From assembly GCA_004431415.1 (NCBI GenBank), contig QPMI01000404.1:32974-96973 (forward strand): a stretch of DNA of 64,000 nucleotides, given 5' to 3'. A program made the position numbers and the translations under genes. The DNA comes from Cyanophora paradoxa CCMP329 (lineage: Eukaryota; Plantae; Glaucophyta). The notes under the pieces were generated by a model. That model was not told the origin of the DNA and did not search any database. It saw only the letters and a list, made by a program, of their open reading frames with translations. Shown one piece after another: positions 1 through 41,078 of this stretch (its first letter is position 1; each line of letters begins with the position of its first letter).

Positions 1-2742
1 GATCCTTCAGATACTTGTTGTTCGCCTTTGCATGGCGCTTTGAAATCATGGATATACCGCCTCTTATTCCATTCTCAAACATACGGTATATCGACTCCTG
101 GCCTTCGTGCAACAGGTCGAATTCAACCTTCGTTAGTTTAAGAGCAGTGTTCCAGAAAAACCCAGGCGACGACATGTAATAGGCAGGATCCAGACCGTAA
201 GTATCCATTGATTCAGACCGATAGTTCTCGAAGATGTCGGCGAGCAAAGTGATATCGAGAGCCATATAATGAAGCATATAGTCTCGCAAAGTCATACAAC
301 CAAGCGCAGACCATACCCTCTGTGCATGCAGATAATCATCATCAGATATCCCCTCGTTCTTGAGGCTGCTAAAGAATCGCTCCTTCACTGGCAAGCAAGT
401 ATCTTCAAGCTTTGAGTCGTCATCAACGTACTCATAAGGAAAAACACCTTTACGAGTCATCAGTTCAAACATATGCAGCTCAGGGAAAAGCTTCCTAGTG
501 TAAACGAATTTCGAATAATCGGGAGAACCGTCTTCATTTTTTAAGATCAGGCCTTTAGCCAGTTCTTCGAGGCTGCCCAGCATATGCTTTGAGCTGTCTC
601 TGAATTTGTAGATGCCGTAAGTAAGCTGGGATATCTTCTCGCTGTTCTGGAAAATGGCTCCCCAACTATCAGTCAAGAGTCCTTCCGGTCGCATCGTCCA
701 CATCAGTTCCTTATGTTTTTGCTCGATCAGTTCTTTGATCGCAGCCTCGGACAGTGACGCCTGATTTTCAGCAGTGATTATCGGCTTCAAACGCTCGATC
801 TCGTCCTTGACGCGTTTCTTATAATCCTCAGCCGCAGCCTTTCGACGAACCATTCCTTTGATTAAAGCCATGAGTACCAGATGCGAGTCAAAGCCTGTGA
901 GGTTATGAGCGAATATCGATACCTCAATTGACTTTGCCCTGCGACGGTTGCATCCATGACAAGCAGCGCCTAGATATTCCCGGTATCATGGTTGTGATCA
1001 GCTTTTTTCTCCCCATTGATCTCCTCTTTGCAAAGATAACAGTGCGTTGCAGCTCTGTGGAATTCCTTATCGTCCGCAGTCATTACGATTGGCTTTTTCC
1101 GTTTCAACAGTTTCCAAAGTTTAGGCTCAATTTCATCTAGCCAACCCACGAATTCTTCGGCTAAAGCTGCTTCATCAGGACCCGATTTCTTAAACCAAAG
1201 TGGTTCACGCAATCCCTTCCCGATGATCTGGCATCCGATTGCAGCGAGCTCATTCTTTGACAAGTCTACTGTAGTTTTCTTCTTCTTCTTTTGCGAGTTC
1301 GCTTGCGTGCCGCTATCACTAATCGCTTTAAAACGAGTCTCTGTATCAAAGCTGCCAATCAAACGAGCGCGAATAGTCTTGGCGAAATCCATAAACTTCA
1401 AATTATGTTTTCCCTCCTTCGGAAGCTTATCGGCAACAAGCTCAGTTCTCTCAAGACAGCGGTCGAATTTCATGTGATTATCGTATGCAGACTCACTCGA
1501 GAATGCACGCTGGCAGGCGAGGCATATCTTTTTAGCATGCTCATTGGCCGATCTCAATAACCGACTAACGTTCTTAACCCAGACGTAGTGCCCGACGTGC
1601 TCCGCATTTTCTCGAGGGATATACAGCAAAACGATTGCGTCGTTTGAGCCTGAGAAATAAACAAGCGAGACTTTTCCCTCATCGTCATCAGAAGGCATGT
1701 AAATGCACAACTTTAGATCGTTTGCAGCTTCGAAGCGTCTGAAGATATTCGAGTCTAGCGGCGTCGGCTCAGGGATCATCGTCCAGTCGTATTTGGAAGC
1801 GTGCTCTCGATAGTGCGTTAGGTCTCGCGCATCAGCACCTGTGGGGGGAGGATGCAGAGCGGCCAGCACAGCGTACTTGAAGCATTGACCTTCGGGCGAG
1901 TTCGGATTGATTGCGCATTTCTTGTTCTTTATCCAAGTCGGGATTTCAACGGTATTGCGAGCTCCTCCGATTAATCGCAGATGCATGAGTGTATGAACTC
2001 TCACGTCCAGATAAGTCACCAGCTCCCAGCTGTCATTTGAGTGCTCCACAATGTTATCGATTTCAATCATGTGCCTGAGGAGAACCTCGGACAGATCCTC
2101 GCCAGGCAATATCCGCTTGTAATCTGGCTCAAAGATTCTAGGCCTAGAGAACGTCTCATGGACCTCCCCGTTGATGATCTCGATTTTCTTGAATTGACCC
2201 CAGGCAGAAACCTTCATGATGATTCCCTGGTCTCTCTCGTTTGCATCAGCTACCCGCCGAGTCAGATATTCGACGAAGCCATCTCGAAATTCTGAGTTCG
2301 TACGCACGAGTGCTGCGAGAGATTGGACTGGCTGCAGTTCGATAGGAATACGGTCCGTCACTGTATCGGAAACTCCATTCAAAGCAGTCGTTCTCACATA
2401 GAACTGGTGCGATCCGGCGACAACACGCACCTGCTGACCTTCGGGATCTGGTTCGTAGCCAGGTAGCTCATCGTAGGCCATAGCTCGGTCCGCTGCGATA
2501 CTGATTGGCGCAGCTCTCTCTGAGATACGACGCCTCGGTCTAAAGTTCAGCGTTTTCAGAGCGTCGACGATAATCTTGTACTTTTGAATTGTCGTAAACC
2601 TAGCCCGAGAGCTGGCCGCCGCAATTCTCAGAATTTTATTTTCAAACACACTTGTTATAACTCCCTGCAAGCGCAAAGCAACGGCATCCGCGAACAGTCT
2701 CTGCTTGATTTCATTCAACGCCCGGCGCTGTGACGTCGACAT
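1..2742 (-). CDS. Protein-primed family B DNA polymerase (pPolB), 3'-partial, with one frameshift at about 979-981
   Basis: ORF 970-2742 has IPTWIKNKKCAIN..QCFKYAVL, GHYVWVKN, SFDTET (Exo I) and CYLC..DHNHDTG. Adding one G restores GEYLGAACHGCN..FAHNLTGFDSHL. The same frame reads FENGIRGGISMISKRHAKANNK at the window edge, collinear with the pPolB at 35352-39401. Confidence 0.93.
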
Positions 2743-2901
2743 TTCTTTTTTGAATAGAGCTGATATTATTTTTGAGACATCAACGCGCTTCAGCGCCGAG
2801 ATTGCTGGGCAGAAACCGTTCTACTATTAGAGATCGCGATTCATTTAAGTCATGCAGATCACGCTCGGTGAGCGAAAAAGAAACGGGGGCCGGGCTTCGA
2901 T

Positions 2902-3231
2902 CTACGCCGCCGTCTCCCTTGCTGCTAACTTCGCAAGCCGCTGCTTCTCTCGCCATTGCCGGTTGCATTCCTTTGCACGCTCACGCTTCTCGGGGTCGCT
3001 CAGATATTTCCGACGCCTGGCTCGCTCCTTCTCTCGATACTGCTCGATGTTTTGCAGGCGCTTGATCCTTTGCATTTTCAGAAACTCATCATGAGGCATC
3101 ACTTCTTTCTCGTATACCCTTACGACCAGCACTTTGACCTTCCTTGGCTGAAGGCAGGAGTGCGAAGCACAAGTAGCTTCTTGCCTACGGTCATCTTGTG
3201 CCTTGCACTGCTCCATCTCATAGCCGCTCAT
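2902..3231 (-). CDS. Small basic, helical Arg/Lys/Glu-rich viral protein
   Basis: 109-aa ATG ORF; NIEQYREK..CNRQWREKQR resembles NIDRKREQCRNYRRRQR in 39428-39718 of element B. Confidence 0.6.
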   Translation of the reverse strand: MSGYEMEQCKAQDDRRQEATCASHSCLQPRKVKVLVVRVYEKEVMPHDEFLKMQRIKRLQNIEQYREKERARRRKYLSDPEKRERAKECNRQWREKQRLAKLAARETAA

Positions 3232-3331
3232 TATTATCCGCTGAGATTTATTTTTCGAAATATCACGCAGACTTCAACGCCGCGTCGCTTCGCTTGATAT
3301 TATAAGGGAGTGTTTTCTTTAAGTGCTGTAA

Positions 3332-3736
3332 ATGAGCGGCTCTGACAGCGAATCATCTTGCGAAAACAATCACGAGAACACTACGATCGAGCTTAGATGG
3401 CCCGGCCGCACAATCTTCTCTTCCGCTGATCGGATCACATTTGGCACTTACAAAGGGTGGTTTTACAAAGAGCTCGTTAAGCTAATGCCGGATTATTGCC
3501 TGTGGCTGCTGGATCAGCCTTGGCTTCCTCCCTTCGATCGCTCCGTTTTGACAAAGCTTTTAACCGCCGGAGGCAAGGCTCACGGCTTGGCGGGTGCCGT
3601 TTCCGTCCGACAAAGCGTGCAAATGCCGAAGCCGCCAAAGAAGAAGCCTTGTCGACTGCGTAAACACGCTCAAACCCTGAAGCGTTGTAGACCAATATCT
3701 GGAACGAGTGACCCCATTCCAGGTGCAGACGCTTGA
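3332..3736 (+). CDS. Small FGxYKG-motif protein (DUF3820-like)
   Basis: ITFGTYKG..PDYCLWLLDQPWLPPFDR; counterpart in element B at 41079-41456 (ISFGIYKG..PDYTTWLLRQDWLPAFDR). Confidence 0.7.
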   Translation: MSGSDSESSCENNHENTTIELRWPGRTIFSSADRITFGTYKGWFYKELVKLMPDYCLWLLDQPWLPPFDRSVLTKLLTAGGKAHGLAGAVSVRQSVQMPKPPKKKPCRLRKHAQTLKRCRPISGTSDPIPGADA

Positions 3737-4265
3737 GCTCCTCTCGAGTCATTCCTGCATTATATTCATCGAAGCAGCAGTTGAATTCTTTTATGTTGCT
3801 AAGAATGCTGGAAAAGCAGACGTACTCACAATTGCGCCTGATTGTGGGGCTGATCCCGCACAGCCGCTGCGTGGTTATCAGCAGCGATATTCGGTAGTGC
3901 CTTCCCGATGTAAATAGCTTCTGCAGCAGCCGGTTGTTGTGCACATTGATGCTAAAATCGTCAAGCAGATCATCTAAGATAACCGCTGTTATCGGGGCCG
4001 GCTTGCCTCCGGCGATTAAACTTTTTTGACGATGCAGCAGATTAAATACGATCTCTTCTTCCCAGCCTTCACAAATGTTCTCCTTGCGGGTTACATCGTT
4101 CCATTGACCTGTAAAAGCCGTTGAGCTGAAGATATATATCTCGGACAGCTGATCCGCCGTTTTTGCAAGAAGATGCTTCAAATAAGTAGACTTGCCTGTG
4201 TTCGTCGGTCCCACCAGGAGGAAGCGCTTCGGGTGCTCGATTTTGCTTGCATTAAACAGGTTCAT
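3477..4265 (-). CDS. A32-like (FtsK-HerA superfamily) genome packaging ATPase
   Basis: Walker A GPTNTGKST, Walker B VILDD, and the A32 motif LFTSGRHYRIS followed by TTQ. Confidence 0.95.
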   Translation of the reverse strand: MNLFNASKIEHPKRFLLVGPTNTGKSTYLKHLLAKTADQLSEIYIFSSTAFTGQWNDVTRKENICEGWEEEIVFNLLHRQKSLIAGGKPAPITAVILDDLLDDFSINVHNNRLLQKLFTSGRHYRISLLITTQRLCGISPTIRRNCEYVCFSSILSNIKEFNCCFDEYNAGMTREELKRLHLEWGHSFQILVYNASGFERVYAVDKASSLAASAFARFVGRKRHPPSREPCLRRLKALSKRSDRREEAKADPAATGNNPALA

Positions 4266-5495
4266 CTAGAAGTTGCTTACTTTAAGGGTCGACATTTGAT
4301 ACGAGTTGATTACGAGCACGTTGTGTCTGAGGACAAAGAAATCGACGACAGCTGGGGCAGCATTGGTGCAGCCGGACACGGTGAGAGTACAGTAGCTGCT
4401 GCTGCTATTATAAAAGTCGTGATAACCAAGGACAGCGTTGTGAAGAGAGTCTTTGCCGCTCTTGGAGAGAACGATTCCATAGACGTTGGCCTCCTCGAAT
4501 CCTAGAGCAGCATTTCCGGTCGTCGAGCCTCGGTACTGGCTAGGGATGTGGTAGGCAGCGGAAACAAACCCTGAGATCGGTTTATTGCTGATGTCAATCG
4601 CGCGATTGTTGTGATACAATTCAAAGTCTTCAATCTTAAGGGCACTGCCGTAGCCAGCGAACTCGTTATGCGCACGAGTGTTCAGCTTCGTCGCAGCCCG
4701 AACTGTCATCAGCACCGAGTGTACCAGGCCCGAGACGTTTGCAAGAGAGACTTCGACTGGCTGACCAGCGTCATCGGTTTTAAGCTGACGAGAACGCTTC
4801 GTAATCACTTCGGTGAAGGGGATACGGATACCACCGTCGCTGTTCGCAGACTTCAACATAGCCTCGGCATCTTCGGCAGGGATATTGGCGAATGAGCACA
4901 CGAGCGCGGCATCGGACATCGTGGCCACCGCATTAGTATCGGTTCCGATGACAGCCGATGAGCGAAAATCGACTTCAATGCTGGGCATATCGGCGAGAGC
5001 GAGCAGAGGGAAATGAGCATCATCCCAGAGCGAGCAGGGGATCTTTACGACGTACTCCCGGCTGGCGTTTTCGATCTCAAGGGCTCCGTCCTTACCGAAG
5101 CCGTAGCTTGACGCCATTGCCTGCGACTGAGCCACAGAGTTATCGACAAGCGTGGCCACCGTAAGCCAGTCTCCGGGGAGAATCAGCTTGAAGCTCCCGT
5201 GGACAAAGCGGATGCTTTCGATGAAGGCCGAGGCGCCGCAAGGTAGCACCGAGGCTGCGGAACCGCCGGCAACAGCTACCTTGAAATAGAGGGAGACGCC
5301 ATTGAGCAGTTGCTTCCGGGGAAGATCGAATGTAACTGTCTGCGCAAATCCGAAGCTGTTTCCGCGGGGTCGAATTGACTCCAGGAACGACTTGAATTTC
5401 GGGTTGAGACCAACCGAAAGACCTGGCGACATGTACAATTCCGAGCTGCCCTTCGTCACGAGCAGTTCTTTCAGAGTGGTTCCAGCGAGTGCCAT
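4266..5495 (-). CDS. Double-jelly-roll major capsid protein
   Basis: 409 aa, beta-rich. The N-terminus (LKELLVTKGSSELYMSP..FLESI..FGFAQTVTFDLPRKQLLNGVSLYF) follows the NCLDV/Polinton MCP pattern. It lies between the ATPase and penton and is strongly conserved with 41933-43162. Confidence 0.88.
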   Translation of the reverse strand: MALAGTTLKELLVTKGSSELYMSPGLSVGLNPKFKSFLESIRPRGNSFGFAQTVTFDLPRKQLLNGVSLYFKVAVAGGSAASVLPCGASAFIESIRFVHGSFKLILPGDWLTVATLVDNSVAQSQAMASSYGFGKDGALEIENASREYVVKIPCSLWDDAHFPLLALADMPSIEVDFRSSAVIGTDTNAVATMSDAALVCSFANIPAEDAEAMLKSANSDGGIRIPFTEVITKRSRQLKTDDAGQPVEVSLANVSGLVHSVLMTVRAATKLNTRAHNEFAGYGSALKIEDFELYHNNRAIDISNKPISGFVSAAYHIPSQYRGSTTGNAALGFEEANVYGIVLSKSGKDSLHNAVLGYHDFYNSSSSYCTLTVSGCTNAAPAVVDFFVLRHNVLVINSYQMSTLKVSNF

Positions 5496-5543
5496 TTTTC
5501 TTATGCTATTATCAAACGAAAATAATCTTGACGTAATAACAAG
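5496..5543. promoter_or_regulatory. Putative bidirectional promoter between the divergent MCP and penton genes
   Basis: 48-bp AT-rich gap containing TTGACGTA; the equivalent 44-bp gap in element B (43163-43206) contains TTCACGTA. Confidence 0.55.
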
Positions 5544-6422
5544 ATGAAAGTGCGTGTTAATATCGACTCAAGAGAGAGGAGCGAAGGGACTCAGACTAAT
5601 TTCAAATACGTCCTGCCTGAGCCGTTGACTAACGTTAAGTCGGTGCGAGTCGCATCGCTGGAACTCTTTCATAATCTTTATAATCTGACAAGCGGAGGTG
5701 TCATTACAACGTATACCGATGATCCTGCGAACGCCACGAAATCGCGGGCTAATAATTTCAAGGCGGGCGTCTACACGGCAACATCTCTTGTGAATTACCT
5801 GAACGCCATACTGAAGACACAGCAGTACAGCTATAGCGGAAGCACGTTCCAGCTTAAATATCTAGTCGAATTCGATGAGGTAACGATGAGACTGCGCTTC
5901 CTATGCGAGGCCCCTTTCGAGCTTGAGTTCTCTTCGAAAGAATTTGCCGGTCTTCTTGGCTTTCCTGACTCTTTGACCGCCGCTTCTCTGGCGCTGGATA
6001 CTGCTGAGACTATCGGTGGAATTGAATATACCGACGAGATAGTGAGCGACCGTCCTCTCGACTTCCTTTATCACTCTTACTTGCTGCTGCACATCGCTCA
6101 GATTAAGGGTTCGATAAAGACTAGTAATCCGTTTACGACGGGGGCGATTGCTAAGATTAACATCGATAGCAAGTTCAACGAGCTCATCAAGTACACAGCA
6201 GACGATAGGACTCCTGTTTCCGGAATAGCCGGTACCACCGAATTTTCTGAGCTCGATATCAGCCTTCGTTATTTCGATGGCAGCCTAGCGCTTTCAAACA
6301 CTGATTTCTCTCTCATTCTAGAGTTTGAATTCGAAGACAGTGAGTATAGCAAGGCCTCGCTGAAGGGTAACATCCGTAGCTCTAACCTCGAATATCAGCC
6401 GTTCATGAGGACTTTCGCGTAG
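5544..6422 (+). CDS. Minor capsid protein (penton, single jelly-roll)
   Basis: N-terminal VNIDSRER..NF..LPEPLTNVKSVRVASLE..YNL and C-terminal ELDISLRYFDG..DFSLILEFE, the pattern typical of NCLDV/PLV pentons; homolog at 43207-44082. Confidence 0.85.
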   Translation: MKVRVNIDSRERSEGTQTNFKYVLPEPLTNVKSVRVASLELFHNLYNLTSGGVITTYTDDPANATKSRANNFKAGVYTATSLVNYLNAILKTQQYSYSGSTFQLKYLVEFDEVTMRLRFLCEAPFELEFSSKEFAGLLGFPDSLTAASLALDTAETIGGIEYTDEIVSDRPLDFLYHSYLLLHIAQIKGSIKTSNPFTTGAIAKINIDSKFNELIKYTADDRTPVSGIAGTTEFSELDISLRYFDGSLALSNTDFSLILEFEFEDSEYSKASLKGNIRSSNLEYQPFMRTFA

Positions 6423-6457
6423 AGACTCGCGCATTTATTTCTTATTTAAAATAAAAG

Positions 6458-7126
6458 ATGGAAACCAAGCGTGGACGTGGGAGGCCAAGGAAGATCCCTC
6501 TGGATGCTGTCCCTGAGCGAGCTCCTGCAGATATGAGTGCTCGCCGAGTTCAAACTCTCAGTGGAGACGTTGGTACCTACCCCATCGTTAAGCGAGCTGG
6601 ACGATCGGATGAGATCGATTTCGCTGCTGAAGCTGATCTTAACTCGATCTTCGAGCGGGTGCCAAATTCAAGGACTCGTAAGACAAATACTAAGCTGTTG
6701 AAGAAATTAGCTGATTCTGAGCTGTATGTAAGCGATAATGGGAAAACGAAACGCTTCTTTACCAAGTCGAATGGTAATAAACTCACAACGGTTTCTGCTG
6801 TTACGGCTAAGCGGCTGATGGAGGGTATTGCTTTGGAAACGAAACTGGATAATCGAATATTGGAGGATAAACCTTCGAAGCAGAAGATTGAAAAAAAGGA
6901 AGACCCCGCCGGAGCGGAGATTTCAGTTGTAAAGAAAGAGTCAGGTTCAAGCCTGCTCGAGAGGACCGCTGAGCTCGCTGAGAGCAATGCGACAGAGATG
7001 CCCACCGCTAACAAATCGATCCTGCGGATTGCGAGCAGCTCAGAAGAACCCGTCTCGGTTGTCCCAGTCAAGCCGATGGCTGCTGGATTTCGGCCTCTGG
7101 CTGTGATGCTTCGACGTTGGGAGTAG
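6458..7126 (+). CDS. Conserved basic hypothetical protein with N-terminal AT-hook
   Basis: KRGRGRPRK AT-hook; shares LSGD..YP, PNSRT, GIAxETK, PxANxSILRIASSS and terminal RWE with 44144-44752. Confidence 0.8.
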   Translation: METKRGRGRPRKIPLDAVPERAPADMSARRVQTLSGDVGTYPIVKRAGRSDEIDFAAEADLNSIFERVPNSRTRKTNTKLLKKLADSELYVSDNGKTKRFFTKSNGNKLTTVSAVTAKRLMEGIALETKLDNRILEDKPSKQKIEKKEDPAGAEISVVKKESGSSLLERTAELAESNATEMPTANKSILRIASSSEEPVSVVPVKPMAAGFRPLAVMLRRWE

Positions 7127-7454
7127 GAAAGTTCAGGCGTAGGAAAGGACGGTCTTCCTCAGAGATATGCTGTAGGGCGTAGGCATCGCGAGCTCTGGCA
7201 GCGGCCTCGGCAGTGGGATAGCTTCCAATGATCTTACGTTTTCCATTGATTGTCAACTGTGCTCTCCACTTGTTATCGCGTTTATGCAACGACACTCCAA
7301 TGTAGCCTGATGTATTATTCCGACCAATCATCCCGCTTATCGCACGCGCAGTGTGTGAGACAAGAATCAAGTTCTCATCCGCATTGTTTAGTCGGTTAAT
7401 TATGAGCTGTGGTTCATCTAGGAATTCGTTTTTTAAATCGTTACCCCACGCCAA
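7068..7454 (-). CDS. AP2 DNA-binding domain protein (first ATG at 7331)
   Basis: RNNTSGYIGVSLHKRDNKWRAQLTINGKRKIIGSYPTAEAAARARD is a canonical AP2 domain of the HNH-AP2 endonuclease type; upstream INRLNNADENLILVS resembles an eroded HNH. Confidence 0.85.
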   Translation of the reverse strand: MAWGNDLKNEFLDEPQLIINRLNNADENLILVSHTARAISGMIGRNNTSGYIGVSLHKRDNKWRAQLTINGKRKIIGSYPTAEAAARARDAYALQHISEEDRPFLRLNFPTPNVEASQPEAEIQQPSA

Positions 7455-7539
7455 ATTTCGTTACTACACGCCAAATCTCTTTTCAGACGATTTTGCGACT
7501 AGCTATGACCCTGAATGCTCTATATGAGTCAGGTTGCAA

Positions 7540-10059
7540 TCAGACACCGCTAACGTGATGACGAGGGGATGGGGTGGCGGATGACGGCGAAGAGGCCCAG
7601 TCCCGTAGAGTGGGCACAAAGTGGATTTTTTTCCCATCATTGCAGCTTTTCGCGAGGCGATCGGCCTGGTCGTTGTAGCAGTCGTACGCTGGATTGGGTA
7701 CCAGTTCCGCTCCCGGCGCCCGGCGGGCTCGTGCACGGTTTTTCTTGGTCGGGTCAGGGGCAGGGGCCGGTGGGGGCGGTTTTGAGTTCTCTTCGGCGAG
7801 GGTAGCAACCTCAGCGGCACGGAGTGATGTCGGGCGGGTAAGGTTAGAGAGAATTTCGGCGCGAGGCAGATGCAGCCTCCGTTCTCTTTGTAGTTTTCCT
7901 ACAACCTGGGCGAAGGCAGCTTCGTCTGATTTTGGCGGGGGGTCTGCTGCCGGGTCTGGTAATGTGATGAGCGTTGGCGAGGGAGGGCGGGAGTGAGCCG
8001 CGAGGGAGTCATCTTCGCTGTCGCTCGCCTGCGATTTGCCCTCAGGTGTGAAGCGGGTCTCGCCGTCGTCACCGATTTCAGAGTCAGGTGGCGTCGGCAG
8101 CGTGCCACCGCGGTGCGAGGTTCGCCGGCGCCGACTGCCGAGCGTTGGAACAAAGGCTGTTTCTGGAGTCGCAAACGCGAGCTGATCCGGGGGAAAGGGT
8201 TCGGGGCCTATTTCAGTGGTGCCGAGGTAAAGGGCAAGTACAATGAAATGGGTGTAGGTCCGTAGTCGTTCCGGGAAGTCCCGAATGAGTGTGCTGAGGC
8301 GCTGCGTCGACGGGTCTCCAGAGAGGACGTAGGCTGTCATGAGAAGAAGGATCCCGCAGGAGGAGCGGTCGATCTGAATGGGTCCGTCGCAGGCATCTGT
8401 CGAGAAGGATGTCCATAGAGGCGGGGCGAAGGGTTCGTCATCCCGTCGAAGCCAGATTCGGACAAGGTCAAGGCCTAGGGCAGTCCGGTCGGGTCGGCTC
8501 CGGTTCCCGCCGTCGTAGATTCGGATCGAGCGTTGTCTGGGGGCGATGAGAAGGAGGACCCAGTGGTCGGCTGGGTCGCCTTCCCGGTGCGGGAGGCGGG
8601 ACGGGACCAGAGCGGGGAAGAAAACCATGCGATACGACCGTAGTGGTCGTGGTGGCAGATAGTGCAGTGTTTGTGCTGGGTTAAGAGTATGGGGTTGGGC
8701 GCCGACACCAGCTGTGGAGATTGCAGTGGGGAGGAAGCAGACGTCGCCCCCGCGGCACGCCGGTCGGGCTGCCAGGACGTCGAGGAAGGCATCGACCACC
8801 CGATCCGGGACTCCACGGGGAAGAGCGCTAGCGATAGTCCTATAGCTAGTTCGCCCGCCGCTCGGTGCAGGGGGTAGGTCTGTGTATAGGCAGGCAAGGT
8901 CTGCAACGTAGAGCGCCGGGGCAGGCGAGCGGGATGGTCGGCTCTCCGGCGTAGTGTGAGCTCGCGGGTATCCAATGATGGCGTGTTCCGCTGCGTGGTC
9001 ACCTCGGTTGAGGGCTGGGCCCCAACTGATGCGGATTTGGGGAAGCAGGGCTTTCTCGGCCTGCGAGAGAGCTCGAGGGAGGGGCGGCACACGGGGTGGT
9101 AGCTGAGGGCTCGTCGCCAATGTTTGCACAGATGACACCGGTGGCAGCGTGGGAGGAGGCATTGAGTCCGCTGCGGGCTCTGGTGAGGACGTGTCGGCGA
9201 GCTTGGGTGCCGATGCAGGGCTGGGTGCGGGTGGCGACGGGAGCTCCGGTTGTAACGTCGTCACAGTTGGCGGGTCCACGGCAGAGTGGTGGTCATGAGT
9301 GGGCCCGGACCAGTCAGCGGGAAAGGAGGGCTTCGTTGGCTTGTAGCCTTGTCCAGTGAGGCTGAGATCTGAGAGGTAGAGAGCAGCGGCGTACCGGAGC
9401 CGGATTGCCGGGAGAATTGTGCGCGATAATTTGCCGGGGGCAGTCCCAGTCATGCGTGAGATGTAGCCCGATGCAATGTAGTCCGCGGCCGCCAATACTA
9501 ACAGGGCGTCTTCACCGTGTTCTGCACCGGGCCAGCTCGGCGAGTTGAGGGTGCTAGCATCGCAGAACCAGCGAGGGCATTGCGGGGCTGGGCCCCCGGC
9601 TTGCTCCTGCCATGCATCTGCCCAGGCTTGAAGCTCGGGGAGGACATCGGAGCAGGGCGTGTGGGAGCCGTCAATAACCCTTATAACTCGGGTGCGTGGA
9701 GAGATAAGCGCCAGGCGCCAGTGGCGAAGGAGTGCTCGACCATCAGGCCCAGGGATGGGCGGGAGGGGGAGCAGGAGGTAGTCAACGTCGTTCGGGCGGA
9801 GGGTCGCTTTGTTTCAGCAAATGAACTCTGGAGGGCAGTCGGGGTCCAGGAGGGCCCGTCTGGCTGCACGGGGAGAGACGAAAATGCAGCTGGGGAGGCC
9901 CGGCGTCCGTGCCCGTTCCTGCGCAGCTCGGCGGGCGACAAGGCGGAGGAACGCAATTACGTGCTGCTCGTGAAGGGGCATTTCTTGTAAGAGGAGTGCA
10001 GATGCGGCTTCATGGTCGGAGAGCGTGAGGGGGTTACGCATAGATGCCGCCTGCACTTG
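7540..10059 (-). pseudogene. Retrotransposon polyprotein part 3: two tandem Ulp1/C48-like protease domains and the RNase H C-terminal helix
   Basis: Same frame as part 2 across TAG 10060 and TGA 9814. Contains DRVVDAFLDVL..HWVLLLI..IRIYD..QIDRSSCG, a second copy HVIAFLRLV..HWRLALI..IRVIDG, and YNDQADRLAK near the end. Confidence 0.8.
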
Positions 10060-13000
10060 CTAGCGTAGAGTTGGCGGTAGCGGCGCGGCGCGGAAATTTG
10101 GGTATGCGGCTGAGACCCCCACGGTGGGCGGTGGCGGATGGTATGCACGGATTGCGTCTGCTTCAGTGAATTTGCCATGCGAAGGCCGTTCGGGCAGGAT
10201 TGGGCTAGGAGTGTTGGGCAGAACTGATGGGTGGCATAAAGTGCAGAGGGGGGCTGGGCCCGCTCGCCAATCCTGAAGTACAAAATCAAGGGAAGTGCAC
10301 GGGCGGTCCGGGTCGCAGCGGTGATACGCTGCAGTGGGGTCGTTGGGGGACAGGGGCAGGTCCTCGTCCCAGTGCCAAGCGGGGTGCTCAGCCGGGAATG
10401 AGCCATTTTCAGCCATCTGCCATCGAGACGGCGAGGCGAGCCAGGTAGTCTGGTCGCGCCGGGCCCCAGTCGAGGACGGAGGGCCAGTGAGGGGGTAATC
10501 CCGGCGTGCATTCGCGCGGACTGCGAGTGCATCCCAGTACTCCGTGCGTGACGGGCCCGTTGTTGGGAGAGACACATCGACTTCGGGCCAGAATATTGGG
10601 TTAATGGGGGAAGTGCAGTGGAGACTGATACGAGTGCGATACCGAATCGGAAGGGCGGCAAGCCAGGGTGCGTAGCGGCGTAGGAAGTCAGCTGGAGCTG
10701 TAATCACGAGAGACTTATCAGGCAGCACTCGTGTGTGGGCCCTCGGGATGCGGATAGCAGTTTCCCAGATTATGCATTGCTCGGCAGGGTGTGCTGCCAG
10801 ATCGGGGGCAGCTGCAGCAAGGTCAAGTAGGAGGTGGTGCGGCGTTCCAAATTGCGCAAGTTCTATGATTTCAGGGTTCGCCAAGTATTGTTCGTATTCG
10901 CCAAGCGTTTGGGGGGCAATATAAACGTGGGCACGCCCCTCGTCATCTGGGGGCCCATCATGGAGGTAGGCAATGGGAATATTTAGTCCTCCATAGACAC
11001 TGCGATATTCCCGGGCTGCAGCCTCCGATGGAGAGGGCTGGCTGCGTGGACGCGGGGCGGGGCCAGGGCGCGCGACATAGGGGCGGGTGGCGTCGAAAGG
11101 CATACGTGGCGGGGCAGCTGCAGCCCTTGAGGGCTGGCGGGTTAGTACCGGGTGGGTTAGTCGGGTCTCGAGCTCTGTTATAGGGATGGTTTTCGGCTCG
11201 TGGGCTGGGGTCCAGGTTAGAGTCGGGAGGGGGGCGTAGCCAGCGCGTTCGCGGGCTGCAACAATTGCACGTATTGCAAGAATTGTGTCGCAGTATGGGC
11301 TGCGGAGAATTTTCCGAAGGAGAAGAGGGCATCCCGTGAGGCAAAAGCGCAGCAGAATCGAGATTGTGCCTTTGCTGTCTAGGGTGAGGGTGCCTCCCTC
11401 CTTGCCGAGGTACGTGAGCGCGAGCATGACAGCCTCGAGCTCGCCGAGGCCGATGTTACATTGGACTCCACTGACACGAGCTGAGAAAGTAACTGTGGAG
11501 AGCAGCTGAGGGTTACGGGCTGCAGGGATGACAACTCCAAACGTCGTTCTGACTGTGGATTTCCCTGCGTGTCTAGTGCTCCCGTCTGTCCAGATTGAGG
11601 TTGCGAGGGCATCGGATGCTGGCGCGTGTGTAGCCTCGATCACCCGAGCTAGTGCCGCCGGCGGGTTCGTTGTGTTCCGGTGGGCCGATGGAATAAGACA
11701 TGGATTTAGGTCTTCACGTCGCGCGGAGGGGGGGGGCTTTGCTTCAGCCACGTCGAGCTGCACTGCTTCGTCCTGGAATTCTTCCCACCAGGGGGCCAGC
11801 TCGAGCCAGATGGAGCGGGCGGCCCCCTCGGGTACTTCGTAGTAAATCGAGCGGGGCTGTGCGTGTACCTCGGCGCCCTCTAGATCTGAATCCGAGTCGT
11901 GCACCGGCCGCGGGGGCAGGGATCGGATTCGGCGTGGGCGGGGGCCGGAGGCTAAGCGGAAGTCTTGGCGGTTCGTCGGAAGCCCGACAAAGGCTAGCTT
12001 TTTGTTTAGCCTTGCGAGCCGTTTCTGTGCCGCAGTCGAGAGTCTTTGGGTCAACGTCGGGTTTGCAGGTGGGAGAGCTTCAGAGGCGGGCTTGTTTCGT
12101 TTGTTGAGCGCCCGTGGGGGGACGAACGGCCCGTCGGCTGCACGACGAGAGCGCTTGGAGGGATGCCCCGGCGGTCCTGCATCAGCGATGCGGGCCACTC
12201 GTACATGGGTGGCCCATTCGTGCCATTCGCACACATCAGTAGCCAGGCCGAGGTGCTTGTGCAGGCCAGCGCTGCCGCAGTATGATGGCGCTGGACAGGG
12301 GACAAAGCAGGCCTTTTCGTCATCGGTCCCTGCGATAATTTCATTGCGTTCGCGGAGCTCAGAGTCGTCGAGCCGCCAGTGGCGCAGGTGAACCATGTAG
12401 ACCTTTTCAGTCTCCGCTGTTGCCTCTGGATCAAGGTTCGCAGCCTCCGGGTCTGCTATCAGGGGCGTGGATACGACCTCGGCTAGGTAGCCCGCTGAAG
12501 TCCAGACCAGTGTGCCGGGGGTGAGCTTGGCGATGAGGGGGCTAGCGCGGACTGCTTGGCGAATATCAAGGGGACGGGAGAGGAGGGGCATGCAAAATTC
12601 TGCGCGGATCGGGCGGGGCCAGGTGGGGCCCTCCGCTTCGTCAAAATGTGCGCGTTCAGACAGTTCTTCGCGTAGCCAATCCCACCATTCCGGCTGTTTG
12701 CGTTTTGTGTAGGGGACGCGGCAAAGCTGCCAGAGCTCTGACCAGGTTGGGATGCAGACTTCGCCATGAATCTGAACTGTGATGTGGGCCATCGTGAAGA
12801 GGCCACATTCCATGAGAAAGACGCCAGCCTTGGCTAGAAGGGCGGGAGAAAGTTGGGAAGCCAGGATGAACCGACGGTCAAGTTTAGCTTCTGTCCCTGA
12901 GAGGCCTAGCACCCATCCGTTCGCTGCAAACGTCGTCCAGTTGGCGAAGGCATGATCAGACGCGGCTAGAGCCCGTGTAATGGACAGGCACAAATGTGTG

Positions 13001-15051
13001 TCCTCTTGCCGGGAAGTTGGTGTGAAATTCGAGTATTCGTAGGGGAGCAGGCAGAGCCCGTGTCGGGCTTGGGTATCCAGTATGCGTTGGCGGTGGAGCT
13101 GTCCAATGAGGGAGTCCGGGAGAAAATAAGCTGTCTCGAGCCGGAGCCGCTCGTCGAGTGTCTGAGACTGGAGCAGGAGCGTGGAGACATGGCGCAGCTG
13201 GTAAAGAAGGTAGAGTGCTGGTGTACTGGTTGACTTAGCGTGGCCTGCGGCGTGTCTAAACACTTCGGACCAAACTCGCTCCAGCTGTGCACAGCGGGCT
13301 GCACTGAGCGTCATGATTCGCATCGGGTAGGCCAGTTTAGGATAGATAACGCGGTGTAAAACAGTGCGAAATTCGTCAACGGAGAGATATTTTGGGCCGA
13401 GGAGGTGCATTGCGGTGCGTGCATGTGAGAGGAGGAGGCGAAATTGGGGCCCCCAGTCAAGCGATGCTGTGAAAAATACTCCAAGGATTCGGAAGGCATC
13501 ATTTGGTTGATGGATGGTGCCGATGGGCTCGGCTTGGGGTCCCAAGCCCACTTTGATCGGTGCAAGTGTAATCGGGCGCAATGGCCGCCAGTCCGGTCGC
13601 CAGAAAGCTACCTCGCTCTTCTTTGCATTCAGGCGGATGTTATGAATGTGTAGGAATTCTGAGAGCCACTGAAAGAAGCGCTGGAGGGTGTGTGGGGAGT
13701 CTGCAAACATCGTTGTATCGTCCGCGTAGGCCAGGATTGATAGGAACGAGCGGGGCCCAGCTGGAACTTTATAGGTCTCCCCGGGTCGCGCGGCGCCTGT
13801 GGTGCCTGGGACAAAATCACGGAGCTTCCCGGAGGAAGTACCTGGGAGGGGGCCCATGCGGTACCCAATATTGGCTGTCCGTGCTTCTTCATCGATTGCT
13901 GTGAGCACCGTGTCATAGAAGATGCGCCAGTGGAGGGGGGCTTCAATCCCTCCCTGCGGCAGGCCGCAGCGAACTTGGAACCATTCTGTACGGCCATGGG
14001 GCGTAAGGATGGCGGCCGTGCGGTGTCGAGCTGCGTAGGCGTGGAGTTGGATGTATGCGCGGCCAGCCGGGTGCTCGTGCATGCGTAGCCGGCGGAAGCT
14101 GGCTTCCATGCTTTCCCAGGAGACGCTGTCGTACGCGCTAGCTATGTCACCGAGGCCAATGTATATTGGTTTGCGGTGGTCATGGGCGTCCTCAAGGGCT
14201 GCGCGGACCGCGTACAGGACTGGGTCGGTAGATTCGTGTCGACGGAAGCCGTAGTTGGGTCCTCGCAGGATCTGGTGGTCTTCCAGACGGGAATCGAGCC
14301 TGTCGGTGAGGATGCCCGTGACAAGCTTCCAGAGAACTTCCTGTAGCGTGATTGGGCGGAGGGAGCCTAGATCAGTAGCGTTGTCGCGTTTGGGGATGGT
14401 AAAGACCTGTCCGCGGAGAAGATGGTCGCATATATGGCCTTCAAGCGTGGCTTTGACGATCGCCTTTATGACCTCGCGGGAAGTGGTCCAGAAGTCGGTA
14501 CTGGCCCATGCATCAACTTCGGCGTGGCTGTGCTTAAGGGTGAGAAGCTGACGATCAGCTTTTGAGAGGTGCGGGGGGAAGAATATCATTTTAAGCATGC
14601 CATTAGTGAGACCCGACGGGCCGCCGGCTCCGTCTGATGTGGCTGCAAGGCGGGCTGAGAGTTCGCGATCTTCTGGCATGTCCGTCATGCCGTCGAATGC
14701 AGCAAGCTGAACGTGTGGGAGGGGTGCATATTGGCGGATCCAGTGTTCCGCGCGTTCGGGGTGCAAGGCCAGGCGAGCACGGATGCGCTCTGGTGTGACG
14801 GCGGCATCACGTGGGTACCAGAATCTCTCATCGAAAAATTCTTTATATTCGGTCAGCACCGCTTGCGGCGCCGTTATGACGTGCACGATGCCGTCCACCA
14901 GTTGTGAGGTACGGCTTGACAGTGCTTCTGAATTTGTCGAACAGAATCTGGATCGCTTGCCCCATCGAGGACGAGCGGGAGAGCATGTGACGTCGGGCAT
15001 CGATGTCGCGGGATAGTTTGTCGGTCTGGAAGCCCCGGCGGTGTGCATCAA
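10060..15051 (-). pseudogene. Retrotransposon polyprotein part 2: non-LTR reverse transcriptase plus N-terminal part of RNase H
   Basis: RT motifs IPK, LRPITL, YGFR, DIASAYDSV, GLPQGG, LAYADD, LNAKKS, ILGV; RNase H motifs IWTDGS, GELEAV, LDSK, WTPAH. Confidence 0.95.
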
Positions 15052-18000
15052 GAGCTGCCATATTTCGGTTTGTCCAGGAGGTTAAAGCTGCGAAGTAGCG
15101 CGACCAGCATTCTTCAGGAGTCGCACGGTCGGAGGCGCCTGGGAAAATTGGGGCAGCTTCTAGGGGGACGGGATAGTAATGGAATTCCGTCTCTGGGCGC
15201 TGAGCTACTTCAAAATTATGGAATTCAACCGTCTGTTCGAGCTGTGTAAGGTAGTGTAGTGGGGAGGATCTGGAGCCGTCGGCACTGTCAGGAGCTAGTG
15301 CCGGTGGGGGGCCAGACGTGTCGGCGTGGCGTGCCCAAGCTGAGAGGCATCCCTGGACCTGAAGCAGGATGCCGGAGTCCTGGTCCTTCGCTCCTGGGGT
15401 GAATATGCTGGGGGTCCGGTCGCGGCGCTGGCGGTATTGGAGGAGCTGGGCCTCACTGAGGTCGGGCGACTCGGCCGCGTATTTAACCGCTTCCACGAGG
15501 GCGTGCATGAGCGTGCGGACTGCCCGCTTGACCCGCCTAGGGTAATTTGGATGCGTCCGCTGTTGTTCCGTGGGGCGGAGGATGAGGTTGACTTGGTGCG
15601 AGGATCGGGCCAGCCAGGTCTGGACGTGCATCTTTGCCCTGACGCGCGTCTCTGCCGGTTGCGCCAGGTAGGTGAAAGCTGGGGGAAGGGGCTGGGTTTG
15701 AGGGCGTACGCTGGGGCGGACCGCGTTCCCTTCGTTATCTAGCGAGGGGAGAAGGCCCTCGATGTTGAACGAGGTGATCACGGGGAAGTGGTCAGAGCGG
15801 ATTGCAGTCAGGACTCGGGCAGTGTAGAGTGTGCGAGTAGCCTGCATGCGCGCTGCCAGAGCTTCGGATGCAAGAATCCCGTCCAGTCGCGCAGCCGTGT
15901 GGAGGCGCTGCGGGGCTGGGGTGTCTGGGCCTTCGTTCTGGGGCCGAGCAGCTTTAACCCAGGTTATATCGCCTGGAGTACCGAGGTCGATCAGCCGCCA
16001 GTCGTGGAGCAGCGTTGTCCAGAAATCCCGCTCAGGGGCTGATTTGCGGGCTCGGGCCGTGGAGATGCGGTCGCGGCGAGGGTCATGGACCGCATTGAAG
16101 TCACCCATTAGCACCAGTTCGGTGTGTTTGAAATCCTTGTGTCGCCAGTCATTCAGGACAGTTGTCGTTAAATATTCCATGACGTCGTCTAGTTCGCTCT
16201 GGGGAAGTGAGCGATGAGGCATGTACACGTTCAAGACAAGGAGCCGCTCGGCTGGAGATTTCTGATAGAGAACGCCAATTAGACGGCCGGGGACCGCATA
16301 CGTTTTGACAATGTCGTGTTTGAATCGGTTGTGCACCCAAAGGGCCACGCCTTTGCCTCGTCCGGCCTCGTCGGCGTTGGTGGGGCCTGAAACGTAGAGA
16401 GTGCCCTCGGGGCGGATGCGGTGTATGGTGCGTACAAGTCCTTGCATTCGTGCGCCTGGCAGGCTGAGTTCTTGGAAAGCTACGAAGTCCGCGGCCCAGG
16501 TCCCCACGGTTTCGTTGAGGGCCGCTAGAAGGCGGTCTGCCGGGTCACGTAAGGTCTCGAGCAGTCCCTGGACATTCCAAGTGACGCAGCGAATCTCAGA
16601 GTTGAGCCGTGGGCAGGCCGCAGAGGGGCTGCTCGAGGTCCGGCCCCGGAGGACGAAGCGGCGCTCATCGGTCGAGCGAGGGTATATGGCGGTGTTCTGA
16701 TAGAAATTAGGCGGGTACAGGTCCGCAAGCGAGAGGGGGGCTTGAGGCGGCGGCTGGTCGCTCGCAGGGGCGGGGTCGGTGCTGTCGTCGTTTATAATTA
16801 GGTCTCCGGATTCCGGGGGGTCCGCTTCGAGGTCCCCCCACGGCGCTGGTAAGGGGCCGGCGGGGGCGTCGCTGTCAGATGAGTGAAGCGTGGCCATGTC
16901 CGAGTGCCAATCGTCGGCTGAGAGGCCTTGTTCTCCGCTTGCAGAATTGAGGAAACCGGGACGCAGCCCTGCAAAGGGGCGGCGCGCCGTTTTAGTCGGG
17001 GGCGGGTATGAGGGGCCGGCGTCGTCGGCGTCGGCCGCATTGTCTACGTCCGTGTCCGTGTCCTCGTCTTGGTCTGGCCATGGAGAGATCGAGATCTCGG
17101 GGGGTGCGCAGTCGTCGGGGTCCGAGTCGTAGGGCTCGAGATCTGCGGATCCAGACGCCCGCGGTCGGGTGTCGACTAGGTCAGGGAGTTCAGCTTCGAA
17201 ATCGGCAGTGTCACGTGCGGCGAGTGCGGTGGCCATCGATGCTGCTGCCGGTACAAGCAGGGCCGCGGTCGCCGACGACGGGCCCGCACGCGTCGATTCA
17301 GGGCAAGATGCTGGGGCTGCGAGAGATGTCTCAAACAGGAGGAAGAGTATAAGCAAGGATAAGAGGCGCCTGCGAAGTGCGCTGTGCGTCAAGCATGCGC
17401 GGCCGACAGCGTGTGTCCGGTTTGGAGTACTACAGTGGGGCGTGATTCGGGCGGCGCTCATCGTGAAGGCTGCGGCGAGCGTTGTCGCAGCATTCTGGGC
17501 ATCACCAGCAATTGCTCTTGCCAGGGAGAGGCTAATGCGGAGGGGGTCCCGCAGCGGGGCCCAAGCCAGCACCGTTATCACGTCTCCTGCTGTAAGGGGT
17601 CTCAGGGGGGGAGGGCGGCAAGGGCGTGGCGCCCGCAAGGCGGGACAGGGGCGCCGCGGGCTCCTAGGGTAGAGCAGCCTTGTGACCGCACGGGCGGCCA
17701 AGCGACGTGCGAGGAGCACGAGCGTAACGCAGGCGTAGAGGAGAAGCAAAATTGTCCAGGTTATCAGTGCACTGAGGGCGTAGGCGGGGAGCGTGAATGC
17801 TAGGAGCGGCCCGATGGCGACTGGGACGAGCAAATTCTGCGCCCTTGGCGCAAGGAGGCGTAAGCTCATCGCTGCCTGTGCAGAGGCCAGGGCGGTCGCG
17901 GACACTGCAAGGATGGCTGTGAGGCCGGCAAGAGGCAAGAGTCCGTAGAGGACTCGCGACGGGAGGCCAGCGTCCAGCTTGGAAACCGCTGAGCGTGTGC

Positions 18001-18889
18001 ACGCGCTGGCGTGTACGGCGCCTTTCTGGAATCCGAGCGCAATGTGTCGTCGGGCAGCCGCTGCGGACAGGGAGGCGAGCTCGAGGAGAGAAGTGGCTCG
18101 GTTTAGGCGTCGGCTGAGGGCCACGGCCGCCGCATCAGTGAGTCGCCAGCGGCGGCGCCATATCTTGGTCAGAGACCAGAGTAGGCGGTCCCAGGGTGAG
18201 GGGCACCAGTCTGCTTTGGCTTCGCGGGGCCGGGGGCCGAACCAGAGGGCGCTGCGAGGGGGGTTGAGAGTGGCTCTAATCGTGGAGCGGATAGAGCTGC
18301 CGAGGCGCCGCAGCCTTTCAGCTCCCTCGTCGATGCCTGCCAGCGGGGCGAGGGCTACTAGACGAAGGAGGAGACCCCCCAGGGAGAGTCCGGTCCGAAG
18401 ATGGGAGGCCGCGGGCTTGCGAGGCAGGTCTCTGGGCGGGGAGAGGAGTAGCTGCGCGCGGCGAGGGGACAGCACTTGCAGGCGGAGGGTCGATCCGTGC
18501 CCGTCCTGTGCCTGCAATTGTGCATGTGAAGTCATCAAATTCATCGATATAGGTGCGTCCGCGTTGAGTAGCCCGAGCAGCCGGCTAGAGAAGGAGAGCA
18601 GGAGCTCATTTTCGAGGTTGTCCCCTACACGGGCTTGAGAGGAGAGGTACAGCAGAAGACCGTATAGGCGGAGCATCGCGGGCAAGATCTCGAGGGCGAC
18701 TAGATATAGAGGCGTCGAGTAAAGAGGCCAGGCAGTATCCCGGGGGCTACGGGCTTCAGGGCGGGGATGGTTGCTGTAGCTACATTCGTGAGCCGAGCAG
18801 TGAAAGTCTGGCCGAGGCCTCCGACTGGTGGTGTACTCATGCATGCGCACGTGTTTGTGCCCGCTTCGAGTTCCGGTGCCAGCGCGCAC
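14843..18889 (-). pseudogene. Retrotransposon polyprotein part 1: hydrophobic N-terminal extension, acidic linker, apurinic-like endonuclease (APE)
   Basis: RCVTWNVQGL, ADFVAFQEL, LNVYMP, LMGDFNAV, ARLDGIL and RSDHFPV are the EEP/APE motifs. The start codon is uncertain (18889 is GTG). Confidence 0.9.
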
Positions 18890-19886: not shown

Positions 19887-20667
19887 GGAGTACGGCCTCG
19901 CTGGCGGAACCGCTGCGAGATGGCCCGCTGGCGCGTCGCGCTGCGGGCCCCGTGCTCGGAGTTCCGGGGACCGCTGGCGCGGCGCGCCGCGGTCCCGGCC
20001 TGCCCCGCAGGCCCCGGCCGCGCCCGCGGCCGGCGAGCTCCACCCCGGAGTACGGCCTCGCTGGCGGAACCGCTGCGAGCCTCGGAGATGGCCCGCTGGC
20101 GCGTCGCGCTGCGGGCCCCGTGCTCGGAGTTCCGGGGACCGCTGGCGCGGCGCGCCGCGGTCCCGGCCTGCCCCGCAGGCCCCGGCCGCGCCCGCGGCCG
20201 GCGAGCTCCACCCCGGAGTACGGCCTCGCTGGCGGAACCGCTGCGAGATGGCCCGCTGGCGCGTCGCGCTGCGGGCCCCGTGCTCGGAGTTCCGGGGACC
20301 GCTGGCGCGGCGCGCCGCGGTCCCGGCCTGCCCCGCAGGCCCCGGCCGCGCCCGCGGCCGGCGAGCTCCACCCCGGAGTACGGCCTCGCTGGCGGAACCG
20401 CTGCGAGATGGCCCGCTGGCGCGTCGCGCTGCGGGCCCCGTGCTCGGAGTTCCGGGGACCGCTGGCGCGGCGCGCCGCGGTCCCGGCCTGCCCCGCAGGC
20501 CCCGGCCGCGCCCGCGGCCGGCGAGCTCCACCCCGGAGTACGGCCTTGCTGGCGGAACCGCTGCGAGATGGCCCGCTGGCGCGTCGCGCTGCGGGCCCCG
20601 TGCTCGGAGTTCCGGGGACCGCTGGCGCGGCGCGCCGCGGTCCCGGCCTGCCCCGCAGGCCCCGGCC
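19887..20667. repeat. 160-bp GC-rich tandem satellite, segment 1
   Basis: CGGCCT(C/T)GCTGGCGGAACC recurs at 19893, 20053, 20221 (the preceding unit has an 8-bp insertion), 20381 and 20541. Confidence 0.97.
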
Positions 20668-20699
20668 TATATCTGCACTTTTGGAGTATTGCAATACCT

Positions 20700-21050
20700 T
20701 CGACAGAATCTGCGACAGAATCAGTCGATAAAATTCGACAGAATCGGTCGACCGATTCTGTCGCAGAATCAGTCGATCGACTGATTCTGTCGATCGACTG
20801 ATTTTGTCGACCGATTCTGTCGCAGAATCAGTCGATAAAATTCGACTGATTCGGTCGACCGATTCTGGCGCAGAATCAGTCGATCGACAGAGTTGGTCGA
20901 TCGACTGATTTTGTCGACCGATTCTGTCGCAGAGTGAGTCGATAAAATTCGACAGAATCGGTCGACCGATTCTGTCGCAGAATCAGTCGATCGACTGATT
21001 CTGTCGATCGACTGATTTTGTCGACCGATTCTGTCGCTGAGTCTGTCGAT
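20700..21050. repeat. Left subterminal array (107-bp period, palindrome-rich)
   Basis: GTCGATAAAATTCGAC at 20724, 20831 and 20938; built from GATTCTGnnnCAGAATC, GTCGATCGAC and GTCGAC. Confidence 0.92.
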
Positions 21051-21481
21051 CTGTTGTGTTTTTATTTTATTATACTTTCAACCTAATCTGCCGATCCATA
21101 TCTTAATTATAATAAGCCAGTTTTATATATATTCTTAATAATTTGTGGCCTGGCCCTAGGCCTAGGCCTCGCCTGCTGCATGCGCCTGCTGTCTACGCGT
21201 ACGTATACTGGGGTCCTGAATCCTGATCGATATATATATAATATATACTCTCTCGGGCCCAGGCCAGGCGCCTGCCCGGCTCCAGCAATCCAGCAGGCCC
21301 CGGGCGCGCCTTGTGCCCACCTGCCTCTGGTTGCTCTGCAGTCTAGAACTAGAGACCGGCGGACTGTAAATTTAGCTATAGGCAGCACATCAACACTGAA
21401 TCATGCAGCGTGGGGCCTAGCACGAGCAGGCTGAAGGGAGAGGTACTAGGGATTCACATGTAGTACTAGTAATTAACTAGT

Positions 21482-24400: not shown

Positions 24401-24670
24401 CGCGAGGCTCCGCTGGGCGGGGCGGAGGCGCGGCGGGCGGCGTCGGCGGCTCGCCGGGCGGGGCCGAGGCGCGGCAGGCGGCGGAGGCAGCTCGCCGGGC
24501 CGGGCGGAGGCGGGCGGGCGGCGCGCGGCTCGCTGGGCGGCCGGAGGCGCGGCGCGCTGCGGCGCGACTCGCCGGGCGGGGCAGAGGGGCGGCGGGCGGC
24601 GGTGCGCAGGCGCGGCGGCCGGCTGCGCGGCTCGCGGGGCAGGGCGGAGGAGTGGCGCGGCGGAGGCTCG
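21482..24670. repeat. Left arm of long internal inverted repeat
   Basis: Reverse complement of about 29603-33157; mirror-image ORFs (e.g. 22197-22580 minus vs 32011-32475 plus). The inner part is a GGCGCGGCGGGCGGC-type minisatellite. Confidence 0.93.
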
Positions 24671-24729
24671 TGGGGAAGCCTGCAGATGCTCGCTCTGTAC
24701 CGTAGTACTCTTGCGTAGATCATCGGATA

Positions 24730-29594: not shown

Positions 29595-29602
29595 AGAGCC
29601 TA

Positions 29603-34025: not shown

Positions 34026-34057
34026 AAGTATTGCAATACTCCAAAAGTGCAGATATA

Positions 34058-39401: not shown

Positions 39402-39427
39402 AAAAAGAAGCTGCGACCCTCCAACCA

Positions 39428-41053: not shown

Positions 41054-41078
41054 AGGGAATAACACCCTTTATTTTTTG

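Follow-up and report, generated by a model that had tools for sequence, protein, structure and literature searches.

Can the catalytic domain of a retrotransposon enzyme be laid out in two pieces that stand more than a thousand residues apart in the same protein? This question is raised by a 64,000-nucleotide stretch of the Cyanophora paradoxa CCMP329 genome (contig QPMI01000404.1, positions 32,974 to 96,973), which we analysed as a whole and refer to as the window; all coordinates below are window positions. Translation of its minus strand from ~16606 to 7633 gives the single long reading frame of a long interspersed nuclear element (LINE), in which an endonuclease and a reverse transcriptase (RT) are followed by what looks like the first part of a type 1 RNase H. 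The sequence matching the last helix of that fold comes ~1,170 residues later, behind an insert with two protease-like domains. Profile alignment, language-model neighbours and weak docking suggest that the two pieces probably form one discontinuous type 1 RNase H. The split layout itself is real, since a distant relative, the protein P0001, has kept it.

The first part of the RNase H, from strand 1 to the His loop, occupies 11179-11610 on the minus strand and was located by its motifs. In the translation of the minus-strand open reading frame (ORF) 7540-15051, IWTDGS stands at residue 1153 (nucleotides 11580-11595), GELEAV at 1203, TLDSKG at 1223 and WTPAH at 1280 (nucleotides 11200-11214). 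The spacing from D to E, E to D and D to H is 48, 21 and 59 residues, compared with 38, 22 and 54 in Escherichia coli RNase HI (L002). YNDQADRLAK lies at 7648-7677, ~1,175 codons past the His and in the frame shared with the four N-terminal motifs; it belongs to the second part (7642-7698, minus strand), PNPAY..YNDQADRLAKSC, which was delimited as an island of identity and by hhalign and would be the last helix with the fourth carboxylate. Between the halves, two stops break the frame, TAG at 10060-10062 and TGA at 9814-9816. An earlier note on this DNA had reported RNase H motifs in normal spacing and a closing motif in the same frame ~3.5 kb downstream, and the translation bears this out. 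The ORF that it described does contain stops at 10060 and 9814, whereas its last 31 codons (7540-7632) are foreign and not element sequence, and a frameshift near 14905 has to be added.

In type 1 RNase H, the His comes after strand 5 and the NExAD helix follows within about 10 residues. The His is present here as WTPAH in the window and WVASH in P0001, and the NExAD helix motif is not adjacent to it. As the closing helix follows only 1,175 (window) or 1,170 (P0001) residues past the His, the RNase H domain would be discontinuous. An NxxAD helix just after WTPAH, named in the earlier note as the finding that would speak against a split domain, was looked for in the window and in P0001 and none was found; the next residues in the window are PKTIPI, followed by a Pro-rich linker, as in P0001. 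A local substitute helix after WTPAH was considered and rejected, the stretch being not conserved and Pro-rich in P0001.

P0001 came from a HMMER search of 1.84 billion representative proteins with the RNase H first part and the start of the insert as the query, in which P0001 and P0002 (described with the insert below) were the only relatives. It is a protein of 3,720 residues, encoded by a single unbroken ORF on an 11.9-kb contig (L001) of an ENA metagenome assembly, and it is collinear with the window element from the endonuclease onward at 31-38% identity. Its WHDAS, GEV, LDSK and WVASH motifs are found at residues 1625-1757 and its YNDQVDKLAK at 2928, and the ORF reads through both RNase H halves and a collinear insert without a stop. 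At an overall identity of 41%, the window element and P0001 agree at each of the four catalytic positions of the first part. The first Asp (WTDGS in the window, WHDAS in P0001) lies on the TDGS column of the RNase HI profile described below, and the Glu and second Asp (GELEA or GEVAA, and LDSK) are in register with the same profile. The closing motif, PNPAY..YNDQxDxLAKxC, forms an island of identity, with 14 of 21 aligned residue pairs identical in a 30-column block, and the sequence around it is a Pro-rich, charged linker that can hardly be aligned between the window and P0001.

Other searches added little to this family. For residues 1000-1663 a homologous-protein search returned nothing, the RT region gave one weak protein match in a sequence search (P0003, E 8e-6), and scans of metagenome contigs and viral contigs found no relatives of the element. 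Past the closing motif, P0001 continues for ~790 more residues (~2940-3720) with a CxxC...HxxxxC motif at ~3082-3142 and a long Pro/Ser-rich tail; Pfam assigned no family to residues 2900-3300 or to the rest of this stretch. The corresponding part is missing from the window copy.

We aligned each RNase H half separately to a diverse RNase HI profile built on rnhA of E. coli and eleven annotated genes of phages (24-49% identity). With hhalign, the first part, from strand 1 through the His, aligned over 125 collinear columns (template columns 18-155, P 0.0038), and its Asp, Glu, Asp and His each fell on the catalytic column. The closing piece fell on the last-helix columns of the profile, gNExaDxLA (P 0.019, or 0.008 with a trimmed profile), in register with the consensus at the Asn, the acidic residue, the Asp, the Leu, the Ala and the basic residue. 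In 120 column shuffles of each piece the observed score was never reached, whether for the first part (24.1 observed; 12.3 ± 2.5, maximum 20.8, in the shuffles) or for the closing piece (18.8 observed; 10.6 ± 2.0, maximum 16.9). The first part was also the top scorer among 11 real 149-column segments of the ORF, the others scoring 10.5-13.0 with one exception. In some natural phage RNase HI proteins of the alignment, the same post-His loop holds up to about 10 inserted residues, so it is a tolerant site.

These figures bear on one alternative, namely that the downstream motif resembles an RNase H helix by chance, as a short motif in a long ORF of biased composition might. The pattern N[DE]..D.LA[KR], together with a looser form of it, has one match in the 127,996 six-frame codons of the window and one in P0001. 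Because it is unique in both and stands at the homologous place, amid linker that is otherwise unalignable, a chance match is very unlikely, and the shuffles of the closing piece argue in the same direction. We consider coincidence a scarcely credible explanation.

Two further lines of evidence concern the fold. By features, the ten ESM Atlas clusters nearest to the first part are without exception RNase H (PF00075 or RVT_3), the best at 0.93. In two-chain predictions with ESMFold2, the pairing of the first part with a closing piece of 45 residues reached 0.57 (runs 0.56, 0.57 and 0.59), a value that the docking tool grades as weak support, and the best of three controls scored 0.01. The runs agreed in at least 57% of contacts with a partner pLDDT (predicted local distance difference test) of at least 50, and the pLDDT of the first part was 71 with the true closing piece compared with 62-63 with unrelated partners. 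In the calibration, 51 of 78 solved complexes and 2 of 108 mismatched pairs attained the docking mark; passes at 0.60 or under came from only 5 of these 78 solved complexes and from all 4 of the mismatches (of 180) that passed.

Several results weigh against joining the two pieces into one RNase H. Against the RNase HI profile, a control segment from the RT palm reached 21.9, near the 24.1 of the first part, which makes the profile-score test suggestive and not decisive, and a narrow enterobacterial RNase HI profile was aligned by hhalign to the first motif only. The first part had no match up to E 10 in Pfam, NCBIfam or PHROGs, and none in the PDB with either the sequence or a two-sequence profile. 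AlphaFold2 runs on two-sequence alignments ended at pLDDT 34.5 and 34.8, gave no RNase H fold and did not place the distal Asp, and Foldseek on the low-pLDDT model returned meaningless matches only. The docking score of 0.57 falls in a band where, by the calibration of the tool, most passes are false unless the pairing was already likely before the test. Both sequences have an acidic residue 8-9 residues past the His (Glu in the window, Asp in P0001) that is unaligned and lies outside a helix, and that might act as a local substitute for the fourth carboxylate. Finally, the family comparison consists of two sequences, the window element and P0001, and a look for RNA evidence found no RNA run that contains the stretch.

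Such results could also be expected if the pieces were not one domain: the first part would then be a degenerate RNase H-like relic without catalytic activity, or else an alpha/beta module unrelated to RNase H, and YNDQxDxLAK would have been kept for another role, such as contacting nucleic acid or opening the downstream Cys/His region as its first helix. The missing curated match, the failed AlphaFold2 fold, the weak docking and the RT segment that scored nearly as high all fit this explanation, as does the way in which the P0001 motif leads directly into the ~790 residues that include CxxC...HxxxxC. A relic would, however, not be expected to keep every catalytic residue, and the four positions of the first part are invariant in two sequences that differ at more than half of their residues. 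Both pieces also map to adjoining, correctly ordered parts of one profile, the closing motif lines up in register with the RNase HI consensus, and the language-model neighbours are without exception RNase H. We therefore regard the relic as unlikely and prefer a single discontinuous type 1 RNase H. The claim of the earlier note that an RNase H loop has taken up a large insert with both halves kept stands for the layout and its conservation; for the two halves being one RNase H, the support is moderate rather than strong.

The copy in the window is a dead, 3'-cut example of a multicopy APE-type LINE, a class to which it belongs by the order of APE endonuclease and RT (by Pfam), which share a single ORF in P0001, and by its repeat depth in the four assemblies described below. 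The APE-type endonuclease domain lies at 15788-16585 (minus strand; Pfam Exo_endo_phos E 1.3e-11, residues 769-1034 of the ORF 14846-18889) and the RT at 13552-14397 (minus strand; Pfam RVT_1 E 5e-21, residues 219-500 of the ORF 10063-15051). Residues 6-566 of P0001 align by tblastn to 16606-14903, and the match switches frame at ~14905, whereas P0001 is one ORF; this match and the three-frame translation place a frameshift between the endonuclease and RT frames at 14900-14915. The defects of the window copy are this frameshift, the two in-frame stops and a cut 15 nucleotides after the closing motif. Upstream of the start of P0001, the endonuclease frame stays open for ~756 codons (16622-18889, minus strand). 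This low-complexity stretch includes hydrophobic, membrane-like segments; it might extend the N-terminus of the protein or represent an ORF1 fused to it, or the frame may be open by chance in DNA rich in GC.

Window positions 6900-11800 were compared with contigs from four public assemblies of this organism. At position 10062, all contigs from the four runs read G instead of A, which turns the codon into CAG, so the TAG stop is private to the window copy. At 7632/7633, where the window element ends and other copies continue, contigs of all four runs diverge from the window and the summed depth drops from ~855 to ~96. The continuation of the contigs past this break translates in frame to sequence resembling P0001 after its motif; the window copy was thus cut 15 nucleotides past the closing motif, and the DNA below ~7633-7650 is lower in GC. 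The window copy lacks its 3' end, and L001 shows no clear tail, its contig ending within or just after the 3' untranslated region. Rfam gave no match within the 64-kb window.

The insert itself extends from 11178 to 7699 on the minus strand (~1,160 codons between the His loop and the last helix) and is collinear with P0001 residues 1766-2917. Could it be an unrelated nested element or a composite of two elements, as the earlier note had allowed for 7680-11190, or an artefact of assembly? The damage to the window copy, with its frameshift and stops, and the cut by foreign, lower-GC DNA show that rearrangement has occurred at this locus. The same layout is nevertheless read through in the single P0001 ORF, with nearly equal insert lengths of 1,175 and 1,170 residues, and the insert shares the strong C-over-G strand bias of the rest of the element. 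Summed contig depth was 500-1,280 over 7556-11800 compared with ~96 over the flank (6900-7391, run X1), that is, 5-13 times the flank; these values are contig word depths and not copy numbers, and they still indicate a repeat. In each of the four independent assemblies the depth over the insert equalled or exceeded that over the RNase H first part, and the insert was covered by paralogous contigs of ~85% and ~99% identity. No contig joint in these assemblies skips from ~11190 to ~7680, and an insert-less form was therefore not found.

The insert layout is thus not private to the window copy. The suspicion of a nested insertion or chimera was not borne out, and the relatives lacking the insert that the earlier note had proposed to look for did not turn up, since P0001 keeps it and none of the assembled contigs skips it. 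We judge a nested element, chimera or artefact to be exceedingly improbable. Removal of the insert as an intron was also rejected, because no skipping joint exists in the four assemblies and the frame is open through both junctions in P0001. An intein was rejected as well: no Hint or intein family was found by Pfam in any piece, and the junctions are Pro-rich linkers.

In the order of translation, the insert consists of a Pro-rich linker, a domain without an assigned family, a Cys/His motif, a first C48 domain that is catalytically dead, a second Pro-rich linker, a second C48 domain with a triad, and a long charged Pro-rich linker. The domain without a family (10582-10929, minus strand; ~115 residues) is conserved in P0001 and in P0002, a 225-aa C. 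paradoxa protein (E 4.9e-08 in HMMER, 40% identity in tblastn), and it had no Pfam match and no usable ESM Atlas match. The Cys/His-rich motif, PAWxWDEDL ... YHRC ... CxLCHP (10222-10389, minus strand), has Cys and His columns that are invariant between the window and P0001, and it possibly binds zinc.

The two C48/Ulp1-like domains are paralogous (hhalign probability 78%, E 1.8e-05 for the first against the second). The first (9364-10002, minus strand), which was delimited by this comparison and contains the in-frame TGA at 9814-9816, has Asp in the column of the catalytic Cys in both the window and P0001, and P0001 also lacks the His and the Asp. The second (8194-8823, minus strand) matched Pfam Peptidase_C48 with E 0.00097 and 19.5 bits, just under the cut-off of 20.7 bits, and scored 12.6 bits in P0001. 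In a profile search of the PDB it matched SENP1 (E 0.006) and SENP8 (E 0.01); HW, YD, Q and CG were aligned in these matches and are conserved in P0001. As judged from these alignments, the second domain keeps a complete predicted His-Asp-Cys triad with the oxyanion Gln in the order of the family. The two Ulp1-like domains described in the earlier note are thus both present as C48-like domains, but just one of them keeps the catalytic Cys. SUMO-like Gly-Gly cleavage sites at the borders of the insert were considered and rejected, as none is conserved.

How might such a protein work? Directly after the RT region, the chain would form the beta-sheet core of the RNase H, which contains the His and all carboxylate positions but the fourth. 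From there, the surface loop that follows the His would leave the RNase H domain and run through the ~1,170 residues of the insert, and the chain would return as the short helix YNDQxDxLAK, supplying the fourth carboxylate. Folding back onto the core, this distal helix could complete a type 1 RNase H that would remove template RNA during target-primed reverse transcription, while the long flexible linkers might let the insert hang off the enzyme. The second C48 domain could be a deSUMOylase acting against host silencing or restriction based on SUMO or a related modifier, or else a protease that processes the polyprotein.

A more far-reaching idea is that the discontinuity is itself functional and the insert a built-in switch or cargo. 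The C48 domain might cut the linkers, giving a two-chain RNase H or activating the enzyme upon processing, or the RNase H/RT complex might deliver a tethered deSUMOylase to the integration site against SUMO-dependent silencing. We offer this as a speculative model and think it rather improbable; if it were true, the LINE would carry, nested in a catalytic domain, machinery for processing itself or for countering silencing.

The surroundings of the element contain two lower-GC (42-51%) units with compact, intron-less ORFs, at 1-7632 and ~35350-44800, which are ~66% identical over 2 kb. Each encodes a packaging ATPase of the Pox_A32 type (3480-4265 and 41218-41931, minus strand) next to a 409-aa ORF. 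An Endonuclease_7 motif was seen in a 1,349-aa ORF at 35352-39398, and an AP2-like motif at ~7170-7310 on the minus strand. The Pox_A32-type ATPase and the compact ORFs give the DNA below 7633 the appearance of an integrated polinton-like virus, and both units look like related integrated polinton-like or virophage-like viruses. The first unit adjoins the LINE exactly where other LINE copies continue, and it may have integrated into the LINE; the far side of such a junction falls beyond the window. Between the unique flank and the break, 236 bp (7397-7632) have a depth of ~2.5 times the flank, with loose contig ends at 7396/7397 and 7632/7633. This intermediate depth and the contigs leaving at both ends indicate that the segment is itself repeated elsewhere; it may be a terminal repeat of the virus-like unit.

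The rest of the window is rich in tandem repeats. Arrays at 19887-34710 and 45261-45883 are mirrored around ~27 kb in a large inverted arrangement, with 160-bp units at 19887-20667, 34058-34710 and 45261-45883, 107-bp units at 20700-21050 and 33685-34025, and 40-bp units in opposite orientation at 23607-24606 and 29638-31065. A 12-kb satellite (46569-58415) comprises 85 copies of a 139-bp unit at ~79% GC, and an array of 318-bp units (61630-63983) lies at the end of the window.

Non-LTR (long terminal repeat) elements of the APE type that bear an RNase H, e.g., those of the I, Tad, LOA and Ingi clades and plant L1, have a contiguous RNase H of ~130-150 residues, and in the usual picture the domains of a LINE protein follow one another like beads on a string. 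The window family resembles these elements in the order of APE endonuclease, RT and type 1 RNase H with D-E-D-H-D positions and, in P0001, in a Cys/His motif near the C-terminus; it differs from them in the ~1,170 residues between the His loop and the last helix. With RNase HI of cells and phages, the family shares the register of the catalytic motifs and the variable loop after the His. In contrast to the inserts of about 10 residues or fewer in those proteins, however, the loop here holds ~1,170 residues with four folded modules, and overall similarity is too low for detection by Pfam. In full-text literature searches, with most subscription journals outside their scope, we found no description of an RNase H interrupted this way. 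Because neither half reaches a curated threshold, domain scans will label such elements as lacking RNase H.

A Ulp1/C48-like cysteine protease in a non-LTR protein has precedents in NeSL-1 and Utopia-1_TSP, nematode elements with an N-terminal Ulp1-like protease and a restriction-like endonuclease, of a type that lacks RNase H except for oomycete Utopia (PMC4640811). The window family, unlike these, has an N-terminal APE endonuclease and a tandem pair of one dead and one apparently live C48 domain inside the RNase H; Pfam found no restriction-like endonuclease in P0001, and with its internal protease the family does not belong to the NeSL/Utopia type. The Dualen/RandI LINEs of Chlamydomonas encode APE, RT, RNase H, a Josephin-related protease and a restriction-like endonuclease in one long ORF (PMC9977147, PMC8557442). 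They are likewise algal LINEs that combine APE, RT, RNase H and a cysteine protease, but the protease of the window family is C48 and not Josephin-related, and a split RNase H is not described for Dualen in these two reports. What sets the present element apart is that ~1,170 residues with four modules lie inside what is probably one catalytic domain and that this layout has been kept across at least two lineages at 38% identity, one of which (P0001) keeps an 11-kb ORF open. The RNase H loop after the His can apparently tolerate a very large nested insert. With its second C48 domain, this APE-type, RNase H-bearing lineage joins the few non-LTR elements known with a Ulp1-like protease, and it provides a natural system for asking what a SUMO-type protease does for a retrotransposon.

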